The translations under genes were made by a program, and so were the position numbers. A DNA stretch of 58,012 bases, taken from the NCBI GenBank assembly GCA_013115145.1, contig JAAPAO010000171.1:1-58012 (forward strand). Direction: 5' to 3'. Origin of the DNA: Perkinsus chesapeaki ATCC PRA-425 (lineage: Eukaryota; Protista; Perkinsozoa). This document shows, piece after piece, positions 42,944 to 51,421 of the stretch (the stretch's first letter is position 1; each line of letters starts with the position of its first letter). The notes beneath the pieces are model-generated. The model did no database searches. It saw only the letters and a list, made by a program, of their open reading frames with translations, and had not been told where the DNA came from.

Positions 42944-43319
42944 ATGCAGGACAATCTCCAGGTGCACGGTCGCCGAGGATTCCTTTGCCCAAGAACGTAC
43001 CTCATAATGGTCAGATATCCCGCTCTGCACAGCTTTCTTCCGACTGGTTCTTTTCGGTCCATCCAGAACTCTTCAAGAGGGACCTGAAAAAGGTTGAGGT
43101 GAGAGCCAATCAGGCAGCGGCGGTCTGGTGCCGTATTGTCTTCAGGGAATCACGGTTCGGGACACCAGCGATAAGCTCGGCATTCTCAAGGCTCAGTACC
43201 CATCTACGGACCGATCAGTGGATGCGCTCAAGACCACTCAAATTGCTTGGGGCCTCAAAAAGACGGAGATCGCAAAGCATCCTGTATCGGTGGCACCGCT
43301 AGGTTGGTTTGATCGTTAA
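42944..43319 (+). CDS. Small hypothetical protein (~85 aa, 3 exons)
   Basis: MQDNLQ|LSSDWFFSVHPELFKRDLKKVE|GITVRDTSDKLG...LGWFDR* with GT-AG introns in phase. Confidence 0.35.
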
Positions 43320-43439
43320 CTAGCTTCTGCTCAATAAGCCTGTGTTTTCGCCTGTAGAGGCAGGAGAGGATCTCTAATCGTAAAATTCATTTTGGGCTTC
43401 ATACTCAGTTCATTGAGTAACCCTTCGAGGCTTATCGTT

Positions 43440-43972
43440 AGGTGTTGCGACAGCTAAGCAACCTGCAAAAATCCGAATTGGAAAACCTGCAATGAAACCG
43501 CGAAGTCCAAGAATTGAACCGAAGAAGCAGCACGCAGACCGGTCACAGCCGGCCTACGCCAGAGTTCGGCAAGATTTGTAGGCTAATCAGGAACGACTGC
43601 CGCCACACAATCTCGTGTCTCTCTTATCAGTTTTCAGACATACGACTATGGCAAGAAGGCTAGTCAACCATCCTCACGAGTCGGTGAGCTCGTGAATGAG
43701 GTTGTTAAGATTGTAGCGAATGCTTTACCGAGTGATGGCACATATGTTACATTGACTCAGCTAATTGAAGATCACACGGAAATACGGGATATCCTCAAGT
43801 TAGACAGATCATGGTGATTTCACTACATCCTCTCTCAATCAGATTGAACAGCGATCTCGGGAAGCCTCTTGTGGATGTCGCTCTGGTCCGTTCTATACTG
43901 GCAACCTACGGACGCAACAAGTTCAGATTTACCAATGTCGGAGTTGATACCAAAATAGCACACAAAAGTTGA
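43440..43972 (+). CDS. Small hypothetical protein, multi-exon
   Basis: TYDYGKK...ELVNEVVKIVANALPSDGTYVTLTQLIEDHTEIRDILK|LNSDLGKPLVDVALVRSILATYGRNKFRF...KS*, joined by a phase-2 GT-AG intron. Confidence 0.4.
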
Positions 43973-44583
43973 GCTGCAAGATACCCTTGTCACGATGGTC
44001 GTTGTTGTTGTGATATTATCATTTCTGCTCTATGTAACTCGAGTTATAAGTGTCACATTGTCAAAAATACCCCATGGGGACACACCGCCAGGAAGTAACT
44101 CTCCCGCTCAGTGCTTCACGTCAATGAGGCAAGTTACATCATGTAGATCTACAGCACCAAGTGCTGAGGACTTAGTGGTGGTTTACACAATATTCGATAT
44201 AGGATGCCCGAATCTTTTCTTGGACTGAATGGAGTGCCGTTCAGCAAAGGAGGCTCTCTGAAGGAAATGCAGTTGATCCGCCGAGGGATGTTGTCATACC
44301 GCACTGCACTGCTACACACGCTTACTCGAGGGAAGACGAAAAGGAGTCCCATACCGTTTGACACGAACTCGACCACCTTACCGGAATTTCTGTTCTCTCG
44401 TCGCTCGGCAAACGATCGTACTCTATGAATGGTAATCCCCCCATATTTGCAAAGTTGAGGGGAACCCGACAGCTAAAGTTGATACATACATGTGATAGGA
44501 AGTATGTGTAGTTATGACGTCTCAGCGAGTATCATAGCTTGTTAGGGATTCTAACCATATCACGTCCACTTCAATACCCGCGA

Positions 44584-44630
44584 ATGTGAGGACCATTTTC
44601 GCGAACTGTTCGCGAAAATAGTCCTCATAT
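44584..44630. repeat. Long hairpin/palindrome in the convergent strand-switch region
   Basis: ATTTTCGCGAAC-T-GTTCGCGAAAAT (44595-44619), extended by TGAGGAC/GTCCTCA after one mismatch. Confidence 0.85.
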
Positions 44631-45168
44631 AAGCGCGCGCTTCGCAGTCTATGTTGCGCAGTGTATCAGTTGTACTGTGTAGCAGTTACACTTTAACTCA
44701 AGTGAGAGTAACTCTAAACTTAACTGGAAACTTGGCACACTTAGTTACCGATGCTGCTGCATAGCGACATTGCTCATAGCAAGCTCCTCTTCTCTTGGGC
44801 ATAATGCCGACACGGTGTGGGCGAGTTCCGACAGTAGCAGGAAGGGATCGAACACCATGGAAGGGAGTAAACTTGCTGCGTATAAGACTAACAATGTTGT
44901 TCGGATTTGACAGTAGGCTTGAGCCCTTATAAGGGGAACAGAGAGAGCTCAACTAAGAATAGACTGATCACGTATGGCCAACCAACGAACAAACAGTGCA
45001 CAGAAGTAATCTGGGCTCTCGTAAGGGAGCTACGGAATCTGTGCATAGGTTAGAAGGACTACAGCGTGATTTCTGCTCTCGTAAAGCGTAGGGTGATGAA
45101 CTGAAGAGACTAACAATATGATGTTATATCGACAATGAAATATCAGAAATTTTATGAACAGCGACGCG

Positions 45169-46122
45169 CTATACAGAAAGACTTGATAGCAGCTGTTGAA
45201 TACCTCTGGTTCTAGTTTCACCGGACAGCACAGCTCTTATCTTCTCCTCGAATGCCTCTACAGAACCACACATCGCAGTTATGAGAGTGTGGAGATGTAT
45301 GTATGTTCCGATTGGACATGAAGGCTTAGCTCGAGAAAGACTGAAGGTGCGCAGCCTTGCCCGCATGTTTTCAAACTCATCGGCACATATAACATCAATG
45401 TACCATAAAAGCAAGCATATCAGCAAGCCTAAAAGGCCTGTGTGCTCAGACCCACAGTGGGGAACACACATATTAAATAATGATAAACAGCCACCGAATG
45501 AACATTTCAGAAGGACCACAAAAGTAGACAACTTCGTGTAGCGTAAGTTTATAACAGTGATATCTGCCTCGGTGTGGGTATGTAAGAAGACAGCAAGCTC
45601 GTAAACACACCACATACGATCAAGATAGTCTGGAGACCACAATACAACCAACTTTTTGGAGGCTCGAACATAGTCCGACAATCTTGATATACCATCTGAT
45701 TTCAGAACAGGATCCAATTGGTTAATACAGCACTTATCAAAAAACACCATAGTGTTTCGGTGCATGACATGCGAGATAATACATAGACCGATAAGGAATA
45801 TTACGTGGACAAGGACCACTCCCATGATGTTGAATGTTGTCGTTGATACGATGGAAAAATATATTAAAGCACCGAGATAGGACCAAGCAATAACTGCGGA
45901 TACCGAAGGAGAGTTGAAGAATGCTAGCAGCGTCACAAGCTTCCAGAATCCACTCGCCGACCATGAGTGGCTCAGGAAAATGTCAATCGAGTCAACTGGA
46001 GATGACGGTTTCGGAGCCTCCTTCGGAGCGGCATCCTCACCAAGAAGGGAATTACTCATCATTATCGATATCATAGAGCAGGCCCTCAAACCTTGTGTAT
46101 CAACCCCATGAGAGATAGCCAT
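45169..46122 (-). CDS. TIR/HET-like domain protein with an inserted transmembrane hairpin and C-terminal TM hairpin, copy A, intronless
   Basis: DIFLSHSW - two hydrophobic helices - VFFDKCCINQLD...K..GI..L..Y...S - LVVLWSPDYLDRMWCVYEL. Met at 46122 is shared with copy B; the open frame extends to 46299 and ends at TAG 45169. Confidence 0.8.
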   Translation of the reverse strand: MAISHGVDTQGLRACSMISIMMSNSLLGEDAAPKEAPKPSSPVDSIDIFLSHSWSASGFWKLVTLLAFFNSPSVSAVIAWSYLGALIYFSIVSTTTFNIMGVVLVHVIFLIGLCIISHVMHRNTMVFFDKCCINQLDPVLKSDGISRLSDYVRASKKLVVLWSPDYLDRMWCVYELAVFLHTHTEADITVINLRYTKLSTFVVLLKCSFGGCLSLFNMCVPHCGSEHTGLLGLLICLLLWYIDVICADEFENMRARLRTFSLSRAKPSCPIGTYIHLHTLITAMCGSVEAFEEKIRAVLSGETRTRGIQQLLSSLSV

Positions 46123-48262
46123 CTGATGATCGTTGATGGATGATTGCTTTTCAAGGTTTCCTCCGTGCATCGACAACAAGCGCAGCCATAGCGGCCGCGG
46201 AATCGTGACAATGTGTATGCGTGCACGTATGTCTCCATTTCTGAGGAGTAGAGCCTCTGACTGCGGGGACCGCAAGAGAAGGCCCGCTCGACGACACAAA
46301 AGTTTTATTCAATAGCCTTGAGGACGGTGACCTGATGCACTGGGAGCTGTGGGGCATGTGTAGCACCCAACAATCGAGCTCAAACTCTACAAACGGGCTA
46401 GATGCTCACCGGTAGTCGCGGTGTGCTTCGGGGAGGAGTCACTCCTCAGGAGTGGTGCAAAAGAGTTTCCTCTCACGTGGGTCGAGTCATACTAGGTTTA
46501 CATCGAAAGAGTAGAGGTACCAGACACGTTACTGAAGGTAGAGGAGAACGTAAGCTACATGAATAGCGCCATAATTGAAGAGGCCTACAGAGAACCAGGG
46601 CCTGTTTACGGGCCTCACATGGAGGTAGTGCCGCGTTATTCTGTGGGCGACGAACTATGAAGCATAGTCTATAAGCAGTTTATGCGACCTGATCAATCGC
46701 GAGCCGAAGCAATGTTATTGCAAAGGGGTGCGATCCGCTGGGTTGTCGTTATCCCCTGACGCGAAGATCTATCCTCCAGCAAAGCCTCCGGTCTTCCCCA
46801 CGTATCATGGCATAATTAAAGTACGTCTACCTTTTATTTATTCACTTGCCAATAGAGCTGTGATCACTTCCTATATGGGCTTTCATGAAGACGTGTTTTG
46901 TTTGGTAAAATTCTCTCAAGTGACCAGTGATTACTGGCCTTTTCATCCAGTTTTCTGATAATAGAATTGTAACCAGCTAGTGTAAACGCAAATGCGCAAG
47001 GCGATAAGACCAGATACTCCTCCTTAGTGGGCTGCGTCCCAGTTACCGAGTAGAATCTATAGCCAGAACGGAGTACACACAGTGAGGGGATCGATGAGAC
47101 TAAACGATCACTGAGGTTAGTTCCTACGAGCGAGAAGTATGTTTCAAGTAACAGCTGAATACAACACGAAGAATACGACTCAGATTCTACAACCTAGTTA
47201 CCACAAAGTATGATTCTCTGGTAACAAAGTAATTTGTTCAAACTCAGAGTAAACAATTTGAATTGGAACCGCATGGCCTTTTGCAGTTTGCACTCGATAA
47301 GACTTTTGAATGTATTCTAGATCGAAGTGTTGTCCGCTTGGTTTGAACACGACACCTGAGTCATTGTGGCTCATGGGTTGCCTCGTGTTGATCACATGTG
47401 CGTGAGCATGTGCATCAATGGTCCAACAGGGGCTTTGGCTGACTTGGAGTATCCCCAATCTCACTCAGTATCGTGAGGTGCAAAATATATTCTAGGGCAG
47501 TGTATATTAGCATTTGCTAGGAGAGAATACGAATATAATAACTGACGATCTTGTGATCACATTTTGAGACGCAACACTCTATTCGAAGGTTCCGATGTAC
47601 GCCTGAAGCGGGATCTCCTTGACGCTCCAGCCTCGCTGCTTCAGTTTCCCAAACAGAGACATCTAAAACTGCCTAACGTTACCTCCGTCTCGTAGTTGAT
47701 GATGTCGCTATTTACGATCCGCTGTCATTCGACTTATATTTATGACCCGTTAACTCAGAGCTCACCACTAAAACTGAAACCTCCTGATAATGAAGAGATT
47801 ATTGCCTATAAGGGTTCCCATTAGGAGGGCTCCTCATCTAACAAAATTACCTTCCCAGGCACCGAACCCGCTTGTGATAAAATAGCTCGTGCGTCAGACT
47901 AGAGTTCTCTTACTAGGCGTAAGAGTGGCCTTACCACTCAGATCTTAGAGACTGATGAAAGCGCACGACCTTGGGCTATAAGATGCAGCCCACTGGCAGA
48001 ATTACGTTGCGAACCGGGACGAAAATATTACGTTCCAAGACTAATAATATAGTAACACACGAATACACTAGGACTATGCAGAAGTCTACAATTTAGACCA
48101 TTACTATACAAGTCTTGAAGGAGTGGCACGCTCGTAGGTTGGACCGACCAACGTGATAGGCGCAAGTACGGCAATTGTGTTACAGCCCGAAGACATTGCC
48201 GGAAAGGATCTTATCGTGTCTACAATACGCAGTAAAACCGTTCGAGGACAACAGGGTAGAGC

Positions 48263-49186
48263 TCAGGTTCCAATACCACCCGATAGGAGCGTTCTCATCT
48301 TCTCCTCAAAGGCCTCAGAAGAACCATACATCTCAATTATGAGGTTTTTGAGATTGTATGTATGGGCTGGACACGAACACTTAGCGCCAGTCAGACTGAA
48401 TGTGCGTAGGCTCACGTCGGTTCTTTCGAGGTCGTTGGCACATTGAGCAATAAGGTACCATACGAGTAAGCATATTAGAAGACCTGATAGGGCTCCAAGT
48501 CCGGCATAAATGGAGCCATAGTGAGAGTTACACGTACTCAACAATGACAAAAAGCCGGCGATCAACAAATGCGAAAGCGCCGACATAGTGCAGAACTTTG
48601 TGTAGGTCAAGTCTATAACAGTGATATCTGCCTCGGTGTGGGTATGTAAGAAGACAGCAAGCTCGTAAACACACCACATACGATCAAGATAGTCTGGGGA
48701 CCACAATACAACCAACTTTTTGGAGGCTCGAACATAGTCCGACAATCTTGATATACCATCTGATTTCAGAACAGGATCCAATTGGTTGATACAGCATTTA
48801 TCAAAAAACACCATAGTGTTCCGGTGCATGACATGCGAGATAATACATAGACCGATAAGGAATATTACGTGGACAAGGACCACTCCCATGATGTTGAATG
48901 TTGTCGTTGATACGATGGAAAAATATATTAAAGCACCGAGGTAGGACCAAGCAATAACTGCGGATACCGAAGAAGAGTTGAAGAATGCTAGCAGCGTCAC
49001 AAGCTTCCAGAATCCACTCGCCGACCATGAGTGGCTCAGGAAAATGTCAATCGAGTCAACTGGAGATGACGGTTTCGGAGCCTCTTTCAGAGCGGCACCC
49101 TCACCAAGAAGGGAATTACTCATCATTATCGATACCATAGAGCAGGCCCTCAAACCTTGTGTATCAACCCCATGAGAGATATCCAT
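48263..49186 (-). CDS. TIR/HET-like domain protein with an inserted transmembrane hairpin, copy B, intronless
   Basis: Paralog of copy A at a constant 3064-bp offset over the core; same motifs; 186/191 aa identical over the first 191 residues. Confidence 0.8.
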   Translation of the reverse strand: MDISHGVDTQGLRACSMVSIMMSNSLLGEGAALKEAPKPSSPVDSIDIFLSHSWSASGFWKLVTLLAFFNSSSVSAVIAWSYLGALIYFSIVSTTTFNIMGVVLVHVIFLIGLCIISHVMHRNTMVFFDKCCINQLDPVLKSDGISRLSDYVRASKKLVVLWSPDYLDRMWCVYELAVFLHTHTEADITVIDLTYTKFCTMSALSHLLIAGFLSLLSTCNSHYGSIYAGLGALSGLLICLLVWYLIAQCANDLERTDVSLRTFSLTGAKCSCPAHTYNLKNLIIEMYGSSEAFEEKMRTLLSGGIGT

Positions 49187-49350
49187 CTGATGATCGTGTT
49201 GGTGGATGATTTCCTTTCAAGGCTTCCTCCGGCCAATGTAAGCAAGCGCGGCCATAGCGGTCACGGAATCGTGACCTGGTACATGCGTGCAGATCTCTGT
49301 TCGTTGCCCGTAGAGTTATTTGCTACGAAATCAATGGTGTATACACTATG

Positions 49351-50083
49351 TTAAGGGCCACATGTTGGCACTGGACTACTATATGCATCAAATGAGGCTC
49401 CGTTTCGAATTCGTGGCAACAGAATCTGTTGTACTAATATCCTCCGAGACCGGCTGCAAGTTGCCATGCGCGGCCACTGAGTCGGTGACGTCGACAGCTT
49501 GGGCGGAGACAGCATTGGGTAGTTCCCCATCATCACTAACCCGATAGCGACTAGTGTATCACAAAGAGCAATACTATCACGTGGAAGCACCGCGGTATGG
49601 ATACAATCATATATAACATGCGGAGAGGGATTGAGAAATGTGAGGTCGGCTATAGGGCCTGTCAGGACCCTGGGACAGACGACGTAGACACGCGAGCCCT
49701 CACTGGGAAAACACTTACCTTTCGTGGGAGGTGAATTATCGGATAGGGAGATCGAGCACCTTGCAGCGGGAGTGTGCGTGGCCAAGCACACGGAGCATTT
49801 TGGGGCAATAGAGTTCCCTCCGTCCAGAAGGCGCATTCACTAAATGTCCCATGGTCATCTCCAACATCTCCACGTCACGGCGCAACGAAAGACCCACCCT
49901 ACGGTGCAGACCACACGACAGTCCACCATACATACAACTGACAGTGAACCGCAAACGAAGCTCACGCCCTTGATAGTAATCCTTCACTAAGGGATAAGAA
50001 ACCGAGCGAGGTCCGTGTGGGTATGTGAACGTTCCCGCTTCGCGACGCCAAATATAATCCCTTTGCTGTCGTTCGCTCAACAA
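49351..50083 (-). mobile_element. Possible LTR-retrotransposon gag/protease relic
   Basis: CSVCLATHTPAARC (Cx2Cx3Hx5C knuckle), a degenerate second knuckle (KCFP...VVC), then IALCDT resembling the retroviral protease ALLDTG, in frameshifted overlapping ORFs. Confidence 0.35.
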
Positions 50084-50242
50084 GGAGTATTCGGGCTTCT
50101 TGGCAAATCGGCAATTATTGGAATTGTATCCTCGAGCGTGTTACATCTCGTATAACTCGAAACTCAACGCAGAAGGTTCAAACCTTCTTAAAAAGTTTTT
50201 GACGCTTAAAGTGGAAGACGGGCGTGCCTTCCGGGAGTGTAT

Positions 50243-51421
50243 TTACAAGCCTTCGAAAGGTGGAGGAGGGCTCTTCTTGGCAGCAAACCAATCGAGAGCG
50301 GCTTGATGATCCTTGGTAGATGTGAGCGGTCCGCGCTCAACACTTGCCGCCTCGAGCCAAGCGGGGAAATCCTGAAGCAAGTAATGCTATGTAGGAACTG
50401 CAGATGGCAGGAAATCTAACCTCGTCGAGCTTCTTTCGAATAACTTTCTTGGCGGCCCGAACACCAAGCGGGCCATTATTCGCAATAGTCGAAGCCAGCT
50501 CCAAAGACATATCGAAAACCTGAGCGATTATCGAAAGGGCAATCGAGAGAGACGTGAACTCTTACTGCCACAGCATCGTCGTTCTCCGTCAACCTATTAA
50601 CCAGACCCAGCCTATATGCCTCGGATCCTTGCACTGGCCGTGAAGTGTAAATCTGATATTGGCTGCTGCGATGTGGCAGTCTATACAACGGTTACCATGT
50701 CCAGTGCTGTAGAAATGGGGAGCATCATAGGTAAGAGTACACATCCACCAACTCCAGGTATCAAACCGAGGGCCGTCTCAGGAAGCCGGAACACTGTCTT
50801 GGGAGATGCAACACGCAACTGGAAGGCAAAAGTGAAGGCAACGCTGAGGTCCGGTACTCACGTCACAGGCAAGGGTGAACTCTAGTCCACCGCCCATAGC
50901 ATGACCATGCACTGCACCAATGACGGGCATGGGGAGGCCTAGCACAGCTTTAACGCCTTCTTTCATGGCCATGAGGTATCTAAAGCGATAAGTCTGGCTG
51001 GGCAGGCGTGGACAAACTCTCACTGTGTGGCGTAATCTGCAGTGAAGCTCCTGGAGGCCTTCAAGTCTCGTCCCGAACAGAAGGACTTTCCTTCGCCAGA
51101 CAGAATCACAGCACGACACTCGCTTTTCGGAAGGGCCGCCAAATACTGCAAGCAGATTCTTGACCAAGTATCCACCGCTCCCTCCTTGCCTTTGTAGCGC
51201 TAATGACGTCCTTCATCATCTCTATAGTAATAGCGTTACGAACATCTGGCCTGTTGAAGGCCAGGTTGTAGACATTAGAGGCACCTGCTGGTACGGCTGC
51301 CTCGGAGAGGATAATACTATGACCCACCCCGTGGAGCCTTCCGAAGGAGAACTTGCCCAGATACCAATCCAGCCTCTGCCGCAAGGGAGTGGCATAGTCT
51401 GGCTCTTGCAGCTGATAGCAT
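50243..51421 (-). CDS. Enoyl-CoA hydratase/crotonase family protein with mitochondrial-type presequence, multi-exon
   Basis: MLSAARARLCHSL...; FNRPDVRNAI; RAVILSGEGKSFCSGRDLK; PVIGAVHGHAMGGGLEFTLACD; FRLPETALGLIPGVGG; EAYRLGLVNR; ...DHQAALDWFAAKKSPPPPFEGL* (TAA ending at 50243). Confidence 0.93.

Follow-up and report, generated by a model that had tools for sequence, protein, structure and literature searches.

Two tandem short-form genes of Perkinsus chesapeaki encode TIR domains twice interrupted by hydrophobic hairpins and belong to a large protist family

Two neighbouring genes of Perkinsus chesapeaki, here called A and B, encode a TIR domain that is interrupted twice by hydrophobic helical hairpins, and this twice-interrupted domain is the departure that defines the family to which both genes belong. 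They lie in a window of 58,012 nt (GenBank contig JAAPAO010000171.1), the whole stretch of DNA that we analysed. Fold, family membership, and conservation are shown by the computed results. On balance, we consider it probable, if by no wide measure, that A and B are short four-helix members of this protist family, in which a TIR domain assembled on one face of the membrane would be held there and would act as an NAD+-processing enzyme through Glu175.

Both open reading frames are intact and lie on the minus strand; over 308 aa they share 79% identity (E 5e-173). Each gene is single-exon and needs no intron, and the original observation of two intronless paralogs stands. The open frame of gene A spans 45169-46299, with the annotated start at 46170 and the Met that matches the first Met of gene B at 46122. 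The annotated form of gene B, P0001, starts at 49138, 16 codons downstream of 49186, which cuts off the conserved N-terminal strand; an exact match of P0001 in public contigs is not on record. Translation verified each of the motifs that had been quoted for the pair (DIFLSHSW, the two-helix insert, box 2, the WCxxE block, and the second hairpin), and their order in both A and B is DIFLSHSW, the hydrophobic two-helix insert, box 2 (FFDKCCINQLDP), LVVLWSPDYLDRMWCVYEL, and the second hairpin (Table 1). Rfam and tRNA scans for RNA genes in 43000-51000 were empty. A search for expression data listed no RNA run covering the genes, and two small runs under the same species label yielded zero contigs, an outcome that does not speak for silent genes.

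Table 1. Positions in the window of genes A and B and of their features.
Feature	Position	Strand	Remarks
Gene B	48263..49186	minus	Intact ORF, 307 aa; four-helix membrane protein with a split TIR domain (short form)
Gene A	45169..46170	minus	Intact ORF; annotated P0002, 333 aa; paralog of gene B
B, N-terminal motif GLRACSMVSIM	49124..49156	minus	Predicted beta strand, residues 13-16; block pLDDT 91; coordinates checked
B, TIR box 1 / strand betaA, DIFLSHSW	49025..49048	minus	TIR structural alignments begin here, model residues 43-46
A, DIFLSHSW	45961-45984	minus	From translation
B, hydrophobic hairpin 1, in place of TIR alphaA	48827..49015	minus	Helices 58-91 and 96-120 in the model
B, TIR core: betaB-BB loop (box 2, DKCCINQLDP)-alphaB-betaC-alphaC-betaD	48611..48826	minus	Pfam TIR match region; contains FFDKCCINQLDP...LVVLWSPDYLDRMWCVYEL
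B, Glu175 codon, catalytic-position Glu (W171-x-x-x-E175)	48662..48664	minus	Aligned to the Glu of WCLDELA, RPPT-TIR 7xoz
A, catalytic-position Glu codon	45598..45600	minus	From translation
B, hydrophobic hairpin 2, in place of alphaD	48437..48610	minus	Helices 193-219 and 224-250
B, C-terminal TIR segment (betaE-like bridge, two helices) and stop codon	48263..48436	minus	Model helices 273-287 and 290-305
Putative gene-conversion tract, A side	45565..46104	minus	Partner in B, 48629-49168
Putative gene-conversion tract, B side	48629..49168	minus	530/540 nt identical to the A side

The Pfam TIR profile (PF01582) scores 32.3 bits in A and 29.0 bits in B against a cut-off of 21.3 (E 1e-7 and 1e-6), and the two genes are its two best matches in the whole genome. 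Because of the inserts, the match is partial and spans profile positions 47-111 only (alphaB to betaD); TIR_2 fell below its cut-off in the same scan. When the core of B was compared with the PDB by phmmer, 21 of 21 matches were TIRs, led by IL1RAPL2 (E 8e-4) and followed by TLR15, IL-1RAcP, and TLR1/2/6/10, with box 2 and the WCxxEL glutamate correctly aligned; the family profile also matches the IL1RAPL2 TIR. DIFLSHSW in both genes conforms to the box 1 pattern D-x-F-[IL]-S-[YFH]. In box 2, the IL-1RAcP segment aligned to FFDKCCINQLDPV is FGYKLCIFDRDSLPG. The classical P-G pair lacks its Gly here, and across the family residues F127, D129, C132, I133, Q135, and D137 vary little or not at all. 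This arrangement of motifs, taken with the Pfam scores, is far beyond chance.

An AlphaFold2 model of gene B (pLDDT 82, pTM 0.80) adds a structural view in which the hairpins were kept in place. Dozens of solved TIRs align to it, with Z 7-8.9 over 107-137 residues at 2.7-4.4 A, and the Foldseek top list consists mainly of TIRs. In a second-look alignment, AbTir reached Z 8.9 (113 aa, 3.1 A), SARM1 Z 8.3, and RPP1 Z 8.2 (132 aa), all three covering model residues 43-307 with both inserts included; MyD88 aligns as well. In an unbiased structural search, SARM1 (Z 7.7), IL-18Rbeta (7.4), and RPP1 (7.3) stood level with generic helical-hairpin matches. Since Z scores of 7-9 do not rise above such hairpins, the modelled structure alone does not prove a TIR fold, and the claim leans on the sequence evidence. 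With a Pfam score above cut-off, PDB matches that are all TIRs, and a model that aligns to TIRs across both inserts, the proposal of an interrupted TIR is borne out. In place of a single contiguous domain of ~130-180 residues, each protein carries two hydrophobic-helix inserts of ~63 and ~58-69 residues.

The three TIR stretches fold as one domain in the model of B and are joined by even numbers of helices (two per insert), which together place the TIR halves on the same side of the membrane in this prediction and speak against their facing opposite sides. From the model and hydropathy, the far-side loops are short (~4 and ~8 residues) and carry no charge, with all K/R on the TIR side; the TIR face of the membrane is most likely cytoplasmic. 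Loops this short leave no ectodomain, and any sensing would have to be intramembrane, which weakens the earlier suggestion that the protein carries its own sensor segment. Kyte-Doolittle 19-residue maxima reach 1.6-2.8 in hairpin 1 of B. The turn of hairpin 2 (NSHYGSIY) carries no charge, and the second helix of that hairpin is modelled to run on as a cytoplasmic helix to residue 261. Both helices of the C-terminal segment lie within the TIR structural alignments, which reach residues 305-307. The protein of gene B stops where its full-length relatives go on into four further helices.

A and B are short at the C-terminus for their family, a huge eight-helix group found beyond this locus and beyond perkinsids. 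By two alignments (A1 and A2) and a tree, they share the family order of N-terminal strand, box 1, hairpin 1, core, hairpin 2, and last TIR helices, and the N-terminal motif GLRACSMVSIM of B is conserved in the family alignment as LRGCPLSTIM. Most of the full-length relatives compared are eight-helix proteins of ~490-500 aa, such as the paralog P0015, whose model (pLDDT 86, pTM 0.86) has the same front part followed by four more long C-terminal helices. A genome census found at least 41 family matches in P. chesapeaki, several of which contain stop codons. Among the 20 best paralog loci of the genome, box 1 is kept in 19 and WC[VI][YF]E in all 20, every locus keeps DKCCIxQ or WC[VI][YF]E, and the spacing from box 1 to box 2 is constant in paralogs at 82-87 aa. 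Public data bring the family to 3751 cluster representatives at E<=1e-3, of which 445 remain at E<=1e-30; those with a named source belong to Perkinsus or to dinoflagellates (Crypthecodinium, Durusdinium, Symbiodinium), and transcriptomes supplied many of them. Models in the ESM Atlas that carry a haptophyte label match with TM 0.81-0.84 over 299-304 residues, and by these labels haptophytes probably belong to the family. Across 38 diverse members, F127, D129, L161, W171, E175, and A177 do not vary. Most members fall below the Pfam TIR thresholds, and ten long relatives (691-1235 aa), scanned against Pfam for further domains, gave nothing but weak TIR.

The WCxxE glutamate occupies the catalytic position, as originally predicted. 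WCVYELA of A and B aligns to WCLDELA of the plant RPPT-TIR, named an ADP-ribosyl cyclase/cADPR hydrolase by its depositors. All 125 family representatives that could be scored carry this Glu, and Glu175 is invariant in alignments A1 and A2. SARM1 W638/E642 presumably has the same W-x-x-x-E spacing as W171/E175. TIRs with this Glu, among them human TLR4 and several protist TIRs, produce cADPR in a Glu-dependent manner, and several protist TIRs are active NADases (bioRxiv 10.64898/2026.04.20.719644). A homodimer prediction for gene B scored 0.00, a value that counts neither for nor against binding.

What sets A and B apart is the lack of the C-terminal four-helix module (~170 aa), both frames ending just past the last TIR helices. 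Searches of the window for this module by tblastn with six full-length relatives, and of all six frames of the whole window with a module HMM, found nothing near either gene or elsewhere in the window. These searches revealed no hidden C-terminal exons, and we rejected an annotation or intron artefact as the source of the short length. The front halves of A and B, from the N-terminus to the TIR core, are 98% identical over ~540 bp, and identity in 60-nt windows is 97-100% in this tract, 75-88% upstream, and 58-73% downstream. By sequence comparison, this near-identity indicates gene conversion. Synonymous divergence is 0.047 in the tract vs 0.80 in the 3' part, where dN/dS is 0.46 (Fisher p 7e-4); a 3' part this old with such a ratio points to constraint on the short form. 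Because A and B end at nearly the same place, the truncation is older than the duplication, and the short form is long-lived. In the tree, the pair sits on a long branch with a stem of 1.66 changes per site. Nearly all core-conserved residues are retained, both proteins carry Thr at a position that is Asp in 38 of 38 relatives (D292 of P0015), and gene A also lacks a near-invariant Cys; these replacements may leave the last TIR segment altered in function or less effective.

The mechanism we propose starts from a complete TIR that would be built on one membrane face from three stretches of chain, namely the N-terminal strand with betaA, betaB to betaD, and a betaE-like piece with the last helices. 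Two transmembrane hairpins, in the places of alphaA and alphaD, would part these stretches. The assembled domain may process NAD+ through Glu175, as an NADase or as a maker of cADPR-type signals, and the membrane helices, being continuous with the TIR core, could anchor the enzyme and control its self-association or its active-site loops. NAD+ consumption or signal output would thereby be tied to a membrane-sensed cue or to partner proteins. The C-terminal four-helix module would have been lost before A and B duplicated, with purifying selection since, and a recent conversion of ~540 bp may have homogenised the N-terminus, the first hairpin, and the TIR core. An immune or cell-death role is plausible only by analogy.

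Four other readings bear on this proposal. The block LSHxW...DxxCIxQxD had suggested a HET-type domain, the fungal heterokaryon-incompatibility cell-death module, instead of a TIR. HET is considered a distant relative of TIR, with a comparable W..QE block. This resemblance of motifs is the whole of the case for HET, to which we attach almost no credence: Pfam HET (PF06985) has no match in A or B at E<=1 while TIR passes its cut-off, the HET profile is silent against the whole genome at E<=10 (the control genomes are silent too), the supposedly HET-like FFDKCCINQLD aligns to the TIR box 2/BB loop of IL-1RAcP, and the structural matches of the alpha/beta part are all TIRs. As a family assignment, HET was rejected. 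A non-enzymatic scaffold that recruits TIR proteins through homotypic contacts, as Toll-like and IL-1 receptors are classically described, with the Glu kept for structure, would fit the best sequence matches, which are receptor-type TIRs, the WCxYEL motif common to TLRs (WCQYEL in TLR15), and the dozens of genomic paralogs that could pair together. We think it unlikely, given a Glu that is universal among scorable representatives and accompanied by W at -4, seemingly more than a scaffold needs, and given the Glu-dependent cADPR that a 2026 preprint reports even from TLR TIRs (bioRxiv 10.64898/2026.04.20.719644), after which "receptor-type" no longer implies "inactive".

That A and B are decaying, non-functional truncations of eight-helix copies, open only through youth or gene conversion, would account for the missing module, the long branch, the replacement of the family-invariant Asp in both and of the near-invariant Cys in A, the presence of other truncated or broken copies in the genome, several with stop codons, and the empty search for transcripts. 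Both frames have nevertheless stayed open for more than 300 codons while their 3' parts diverged to dS 0.80, and the 3' dN/dS, the near-identical end points, and the retained core residues speak for selection on an established short form; decay is, in our judgement, distinctly improbable. Bacterial Tcp proteins interfere with Toll signalling by TIR mimicry, and Perkinsus lives within haemocytes, so that a virulence factor mimicking host TIR adaptors and disturbing Toll signalling in bivalve haemocytes might be imagined, all the more as animal receptor-type TIRs are the best sequence matches and the family is enlarged, with members in tandem. The architecture is, however, abundant in free-living and symbiotic dinoflagellates and, by Atlas labels, in haptophytes, and the proteins are multi-pass membrane proteins with the TIR predicted toward the parasite's own cytoplasm, which makes such mimicry very improbable indeed. 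The proposed membrane-held, Glu175-dependent enzyme is the reading that we retain.

TIR domains are a shared enzymatic and adaptor core of bacterial, plant, and animal immunity, and, to our knowledge, every characterised TIR is one soluble, contiguous unit. We found no description of the split architecture in the literature searched. A TIR whose chain crosses into a membrane at two places would link NAD+-derived signalling or NAD+ depletion to that membrane in a novel manner, in a family of thousands of sequence clusters spread over protists of ecological and economic importance (shellfish parasites, coral symbionts, and bloom-forming algae). P. chesapeaki itself is a parasite of clams and oysters. 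With most members below Pfam TIR thresholds, domain-based censuses of protist immunity probably undercount them. As a natural "minimal" four-helix version, A and B might prove the simplest to express, assay, and study structurally. In the haptophyte Gephyrocapsa, TIRs respond when a virus infects the cells (PMC12489294). More speculatively, and unlikely to hold in full, the family may form an unrecognised class of membrane receptor-enzymes in perkinsids, dinoflagellates, and haptophytes, in which the helices replacing alphaA and alphaD would gate an NAD+-cleaving or cADPR-making TIR and so provide a membrane-coupled immune, cell-death, or calcium-signalling switch; the four-helix A and B might then regulate or partner eight-helix forms, their TIR cores being kept alike by gene conversion.

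Set beside known systems, A and B share with the plant TIR NADases (RPP1, RUN1, RPS4, and RPPT-TIR, whether TIR-only or TNL) the alphaC motif W-C-[LV]-x-E-L with its catalytic Glu, and the plant fold aligns to the model of B over 126-137 residues at Z 7-8.2. Plant TIRs are soluble and contiguous, alone or fused to NB-ARC-LRR, whereas A and B have hairpins for alphaA and alphaD and neither NB-ARC nor LRR. The TIRs of Toll-like and IL-1 receptors, their best sequence matches, share box 2 (K-x-C-I...D-x-x-P) and WCxYEL, and these receptors are likewise membrane proteins with a cytoplasmic TIR; they have a single helix before an unbroken TIR and a large ligand-sensing ectodomain, whereas the helices of A and B lie inside the domain and an ectodomain is lacking. 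SARM1 and AbTir give the top structural scores (Z 8.3 and 8.9; ~112 residues, ~3 A) and, unlike A and B, are soluble and regulated by ARM/SAM domains or filament formation without membrane insertion. In Dictyostelium, TirC is a toxic TIR NADase restrained by a membrane helix, and removal of the tether unleashes its toxicity (PMC13142454). This protist TIR, held at the membrane by a hydrophobic helix, is a precedent for a tether that acts as a brake; TirC is a recent acquisition from bacteria, its one N-terminal helix lies outside the TIR, and its domain is unsplit, whereas that of A and B is split. The full-length eight-helix split-TIR proteins run from N-terminal strand to last TIR helices in the same order as A and B and differ from them in having the ~170-aa C-terminal module and the invariant Asp that is Thr in both genes.

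The proteins encoded by two minus-strand paralogs, gene A (P0002) and gene B (P0001), carry a TIR-fold domain with a glutamate at the catalytic position, divided into three segments that are joined by two hydrophobic hairpins. Translation of the sub-ranges gives the same order in both: DIFLSHSW, a hydrophobic insert of ~63 residues, HRNTMVFFDKCCINQLDP...KKLVVLWSPDYLDRMWCVYELAVFL...ITVI, a second hydrophobic insert, and a tail of ~57-70 residues. Every motif named in the original prediction is therefore present in the two paralogs, which are 79% identical as proteins (E 5e-173). That observation holds overall, and its interpretation as a membrane-bound TIR/HET-like enzyme with an immune or cell-death role is, taken as a whole, partly supported.

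Open reading frames of the pair and the corresponding public gene models
Feature	Position in the window	Strand	Description
Gene A ORF	45169-46299	minus	intact open reading frame
Gene B ORF	48263-49186	minus	intact open reading frame
P0002 (gene A, public annotation)	start 46170	minus	single exon, 333 aa
P0001 (gene B, public annotation)	start 49138	minus	single exon, 291 aa

The N-terminal motif GLRACSMVSIM of gene B corresponds to LRGCPLSTIM in relatives and forms a high-confidence extra strand in the predicted model. The annotated start of gene B is its 17th codon (window 49138-49186), and P0001 thereby lacks this motif; because that start would cut off a conserved, confidently modelled strand, translation more likely begins at the ATG at 49186.

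The TIR assignment is carried by sequence and structure together. Both proteins pass the curated cut-off of the Pfam TIR profile PF01582 (32.3 and 29.0 bits against 21.3) and are its two best matches genome-wide. A phmmer search of the gene B core (residues 121-206, E<=10) against all PDB chains returned 21 matches, every one a TIR domain, with IL1RAPL2 the best (E 8e-4), and aligned FFDKCCINQLDPV with the box 2/BB-loop stretch of IL-1RAcP; the TIR of IL1RAPL2 is also matched by the family profile. The AlphaFold2 model of gene B, built from an input alignment of 33 sequences (pLDDT 82, pTM 0.80), places strands at 13-16, 46-52, 125-128, 155-162, and 188-192, long helices at 58-91, 96-120, 193-219, and 224-261, and the two last helices within 273-305. 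TIRs form the majority of its Foldseek top list, but with E values of only 0.045-1. Structural re-alignment gave Z 8.9 to AbTir (113 aa, 3.1 Å), 8.3 to SARM1, 8.2 to MyD88, and 8.2 to RPP1 (132 aa), and all four alignments start at residue 43-46 and end at 305-307, crossing both inserts. In a Foldseek-independent search of 48,161 representatives, TIRs reached Z 7.2-7.7 (111-135 aa), level with trivial matches to long helical hairpins, and the fold assignment therefore needs sequence and structure jointly rather than Z scores alone. The alternative identity in the original prediction, a HET domain, is not supported: neither protein has a Pfam HET match at E<=1, whereas Pfam TIR passes its cut-off. 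The Pfam HET profile found no match across the whole genome either, though it was equally silent in the control genomes.

The two hairpins replace defined elements of this TIR fold. Insert 1 lies between betaA and betaB, in the place of TIR alphaA, and insert 2 between betaD and a betaE-like piece, in the place of alphaD; both are helix pairs in the gene B model. Since each insert contributes two helices, the three TIR segments must share one membrane side, and the model packs them into a single domain; the opposite-side arrangement of the two halves, which the original prediction had named as evidence against itself, was not found. Hydropathy peaks at up to 2.8 in hairpin 1 and up to 2.2-2.35 in hairpin 2. 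The short far-side turns, ~STTT and NSHYGSIY, lack charged residues, and because every Lys and Arg lies on the TIR side, the positive-inside rule suggests that the TIR faces the cytoplasm. By hydropathy and the model, these turns are all that lies on the far side and there is no ectodomain, so the "sensor segment" originally envisaged could sense at most inside the membrane.

Glu175 sits four residues past Trp171 (gene B numbering), in a WCVYELA stretch that phmmer aligned with WCLDELA of the plant RPPT-TIR, named by its depositors ADP-ribosyl cyclase/cADPR hydrolase, which agrees with the catalytic position first proposed for it. It is invariant in family alignments A1 and A2 and is kept in 20/20 paralog loci examined in the P. 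chesapeaki genome and in all 125 representatives that could be scored out of the 139 best database matches. The same motif occurs in the receptor-type TIR of TLR15 (WCQYEL), and on the classical view Glu by itself would therefore be no proof of catalysis. According to a preprint from 2026, cADPR synthesis by TLR TIRs, including human TLR4, and by several protist TIRs depends on the Glu (10.64898/2026.04.20.719644), a result that raises the prior for activity.

The pair belongs to a very large, conserved family. A genome-wide census of paralogs, as the original prediction suggested, found at least 41 matching places in P. chesapeaki, many as tandem clusters, and an exhaustive profile search recovered 3751 cluster representatives at E<=1e-3, of which 2240 pass E<=1e-10 and 445 pass E<=1e-30, with matches typically running as one stretch through both hairpins. 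The three motifs occur in order in 116 of the 139 best representatives (median spacing of box 1 and box 2, 95 aa), and 115 of these 116 have a strongly hydrophobic segment between the two boxes. Named members come from P. chesapeaki, P. olseni, Crypthecodinium cohnii, Durusdinium trenchii, and several Symbiodinium species, and many derive from MMETSP transcriptomes; relatives are therefore transcribed. Haptophyte-labelled ESM Atlas clusters match the whole model (TM 0.81-0.84 over 299-304 residues). Most members lack Pfam annotation, and our literature search found no published description of the split architecture, in which a known domain takes a novel layout; a eukaryotic TIR atlas contains several uncharacterised, eukaryote-only clades (PMC13142454).

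Several observations accompany this survey. One haptophyte-labelled ESM Atlas cluster comprises 774-aa proteins with a heme NO-binding (HNOB) domain (TM 0.60 over 212 residues against the model) and may represent a fusion of a sensor domain to a split TIR. Some Symbiodinium members are labelled ABCF5, cpr6, or peptidyl-prolyl isomerase D, probably as a result of merged gene models, so the family is hidden behind database names. A metagenome relative, P0032 (468 aa, 28% identical; ENA contig ERZ25069412, 1037-9870), is part of a head-to-tail array of a 3964-bp unit in at least three copies, with three small ORFs between copies.

What the window contributes to this family is a naturally shortened, gene-converted pair. 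The majority of full-length relatives compared have 490-500 aa and four more long helices past the last TIR helices (alignment A1), and the model of the full-length paralog P0015 (pLDDT 86, pTM 0.86) shows the same four additional C-terminal helices; both proteins of the pair end directly past the last TIR helices, and the C-terminal module is not encoded anywhere within the window. A long stem of 1.66 changes per site leads to the pair in the family tree, and its sister group is a clade of full-length members from P. chesapeaki and P. olseni. The pair retains nearly all conserved core residues; both copies have Thr (B Thr273, window 48368-48370; A Thr272) against Asp in 38/38 relatives (P0015 D292), at an alignment-dependent position, and in copy A Pro replaces a near-invariant Cys. 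Another paralog, P0011 (FOL47_004441, 363 aa, G000:C1654:13108-14196), is also short, ending past the fifth helix, and shortening has therefore occurred repeatedly within the genome. This protein, annotated as P. chesapeaki, matches a locus outside the window in the window's genome at 100% identity, which identifies that genome as P. chesapeaki or the same assembly.

DNA similarity between the copies is limited to 45204-46225 against 48262-49291 and is mosaic: identity is 75-88% just upstream and at the start, reaches 530/540 nt between A 46104-45565 and B 49168-48629, and past this tract drops abruptly to 58-73% as far as the stop codons. Codons 1-190 have a dS of 0.047, against 0.80 for the remaining codons. 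Together, the mosaic identity and the dS contrast indicate a recent gene conversion over the N-terminus, hairpin 1, and the TIR core, on top of an old duplication. The copies terminate at nearly the same point, and the old 3' part has a dN/dS of 0.46 (Fisher p 7e-4); the truncation is therefore older than the duplication, and selection has retained the short form. The spacer between the genes contains a ~180-bp dispersed repeat (window 46985-47166) with at least nine other genome copies at 74-83% identity, in which no Rfam family or tRNA was found.

An immune or cell-death role for the pair may be suggested by analogy only. In the haptophyte Gephyrocapsa, TIR genes, which may or may not belong to the split-TIR family, respond to virus infection (PMC12489294). 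We infer that the TIR would process NAD+ through Glu175. Since the membrane helices run straight on into the core at the alphaA and alphaD places, they would control its activity or oligomerisation. The alphaA and alphaD helices provide the AE and DE contact surfaces in characterised TIR assemblies. A precedent for the membrane restraint proposed for the pair is Dictyostelium TirC, a toxic TIR NADase that is restrained by a membrane tether (PMC13142454).
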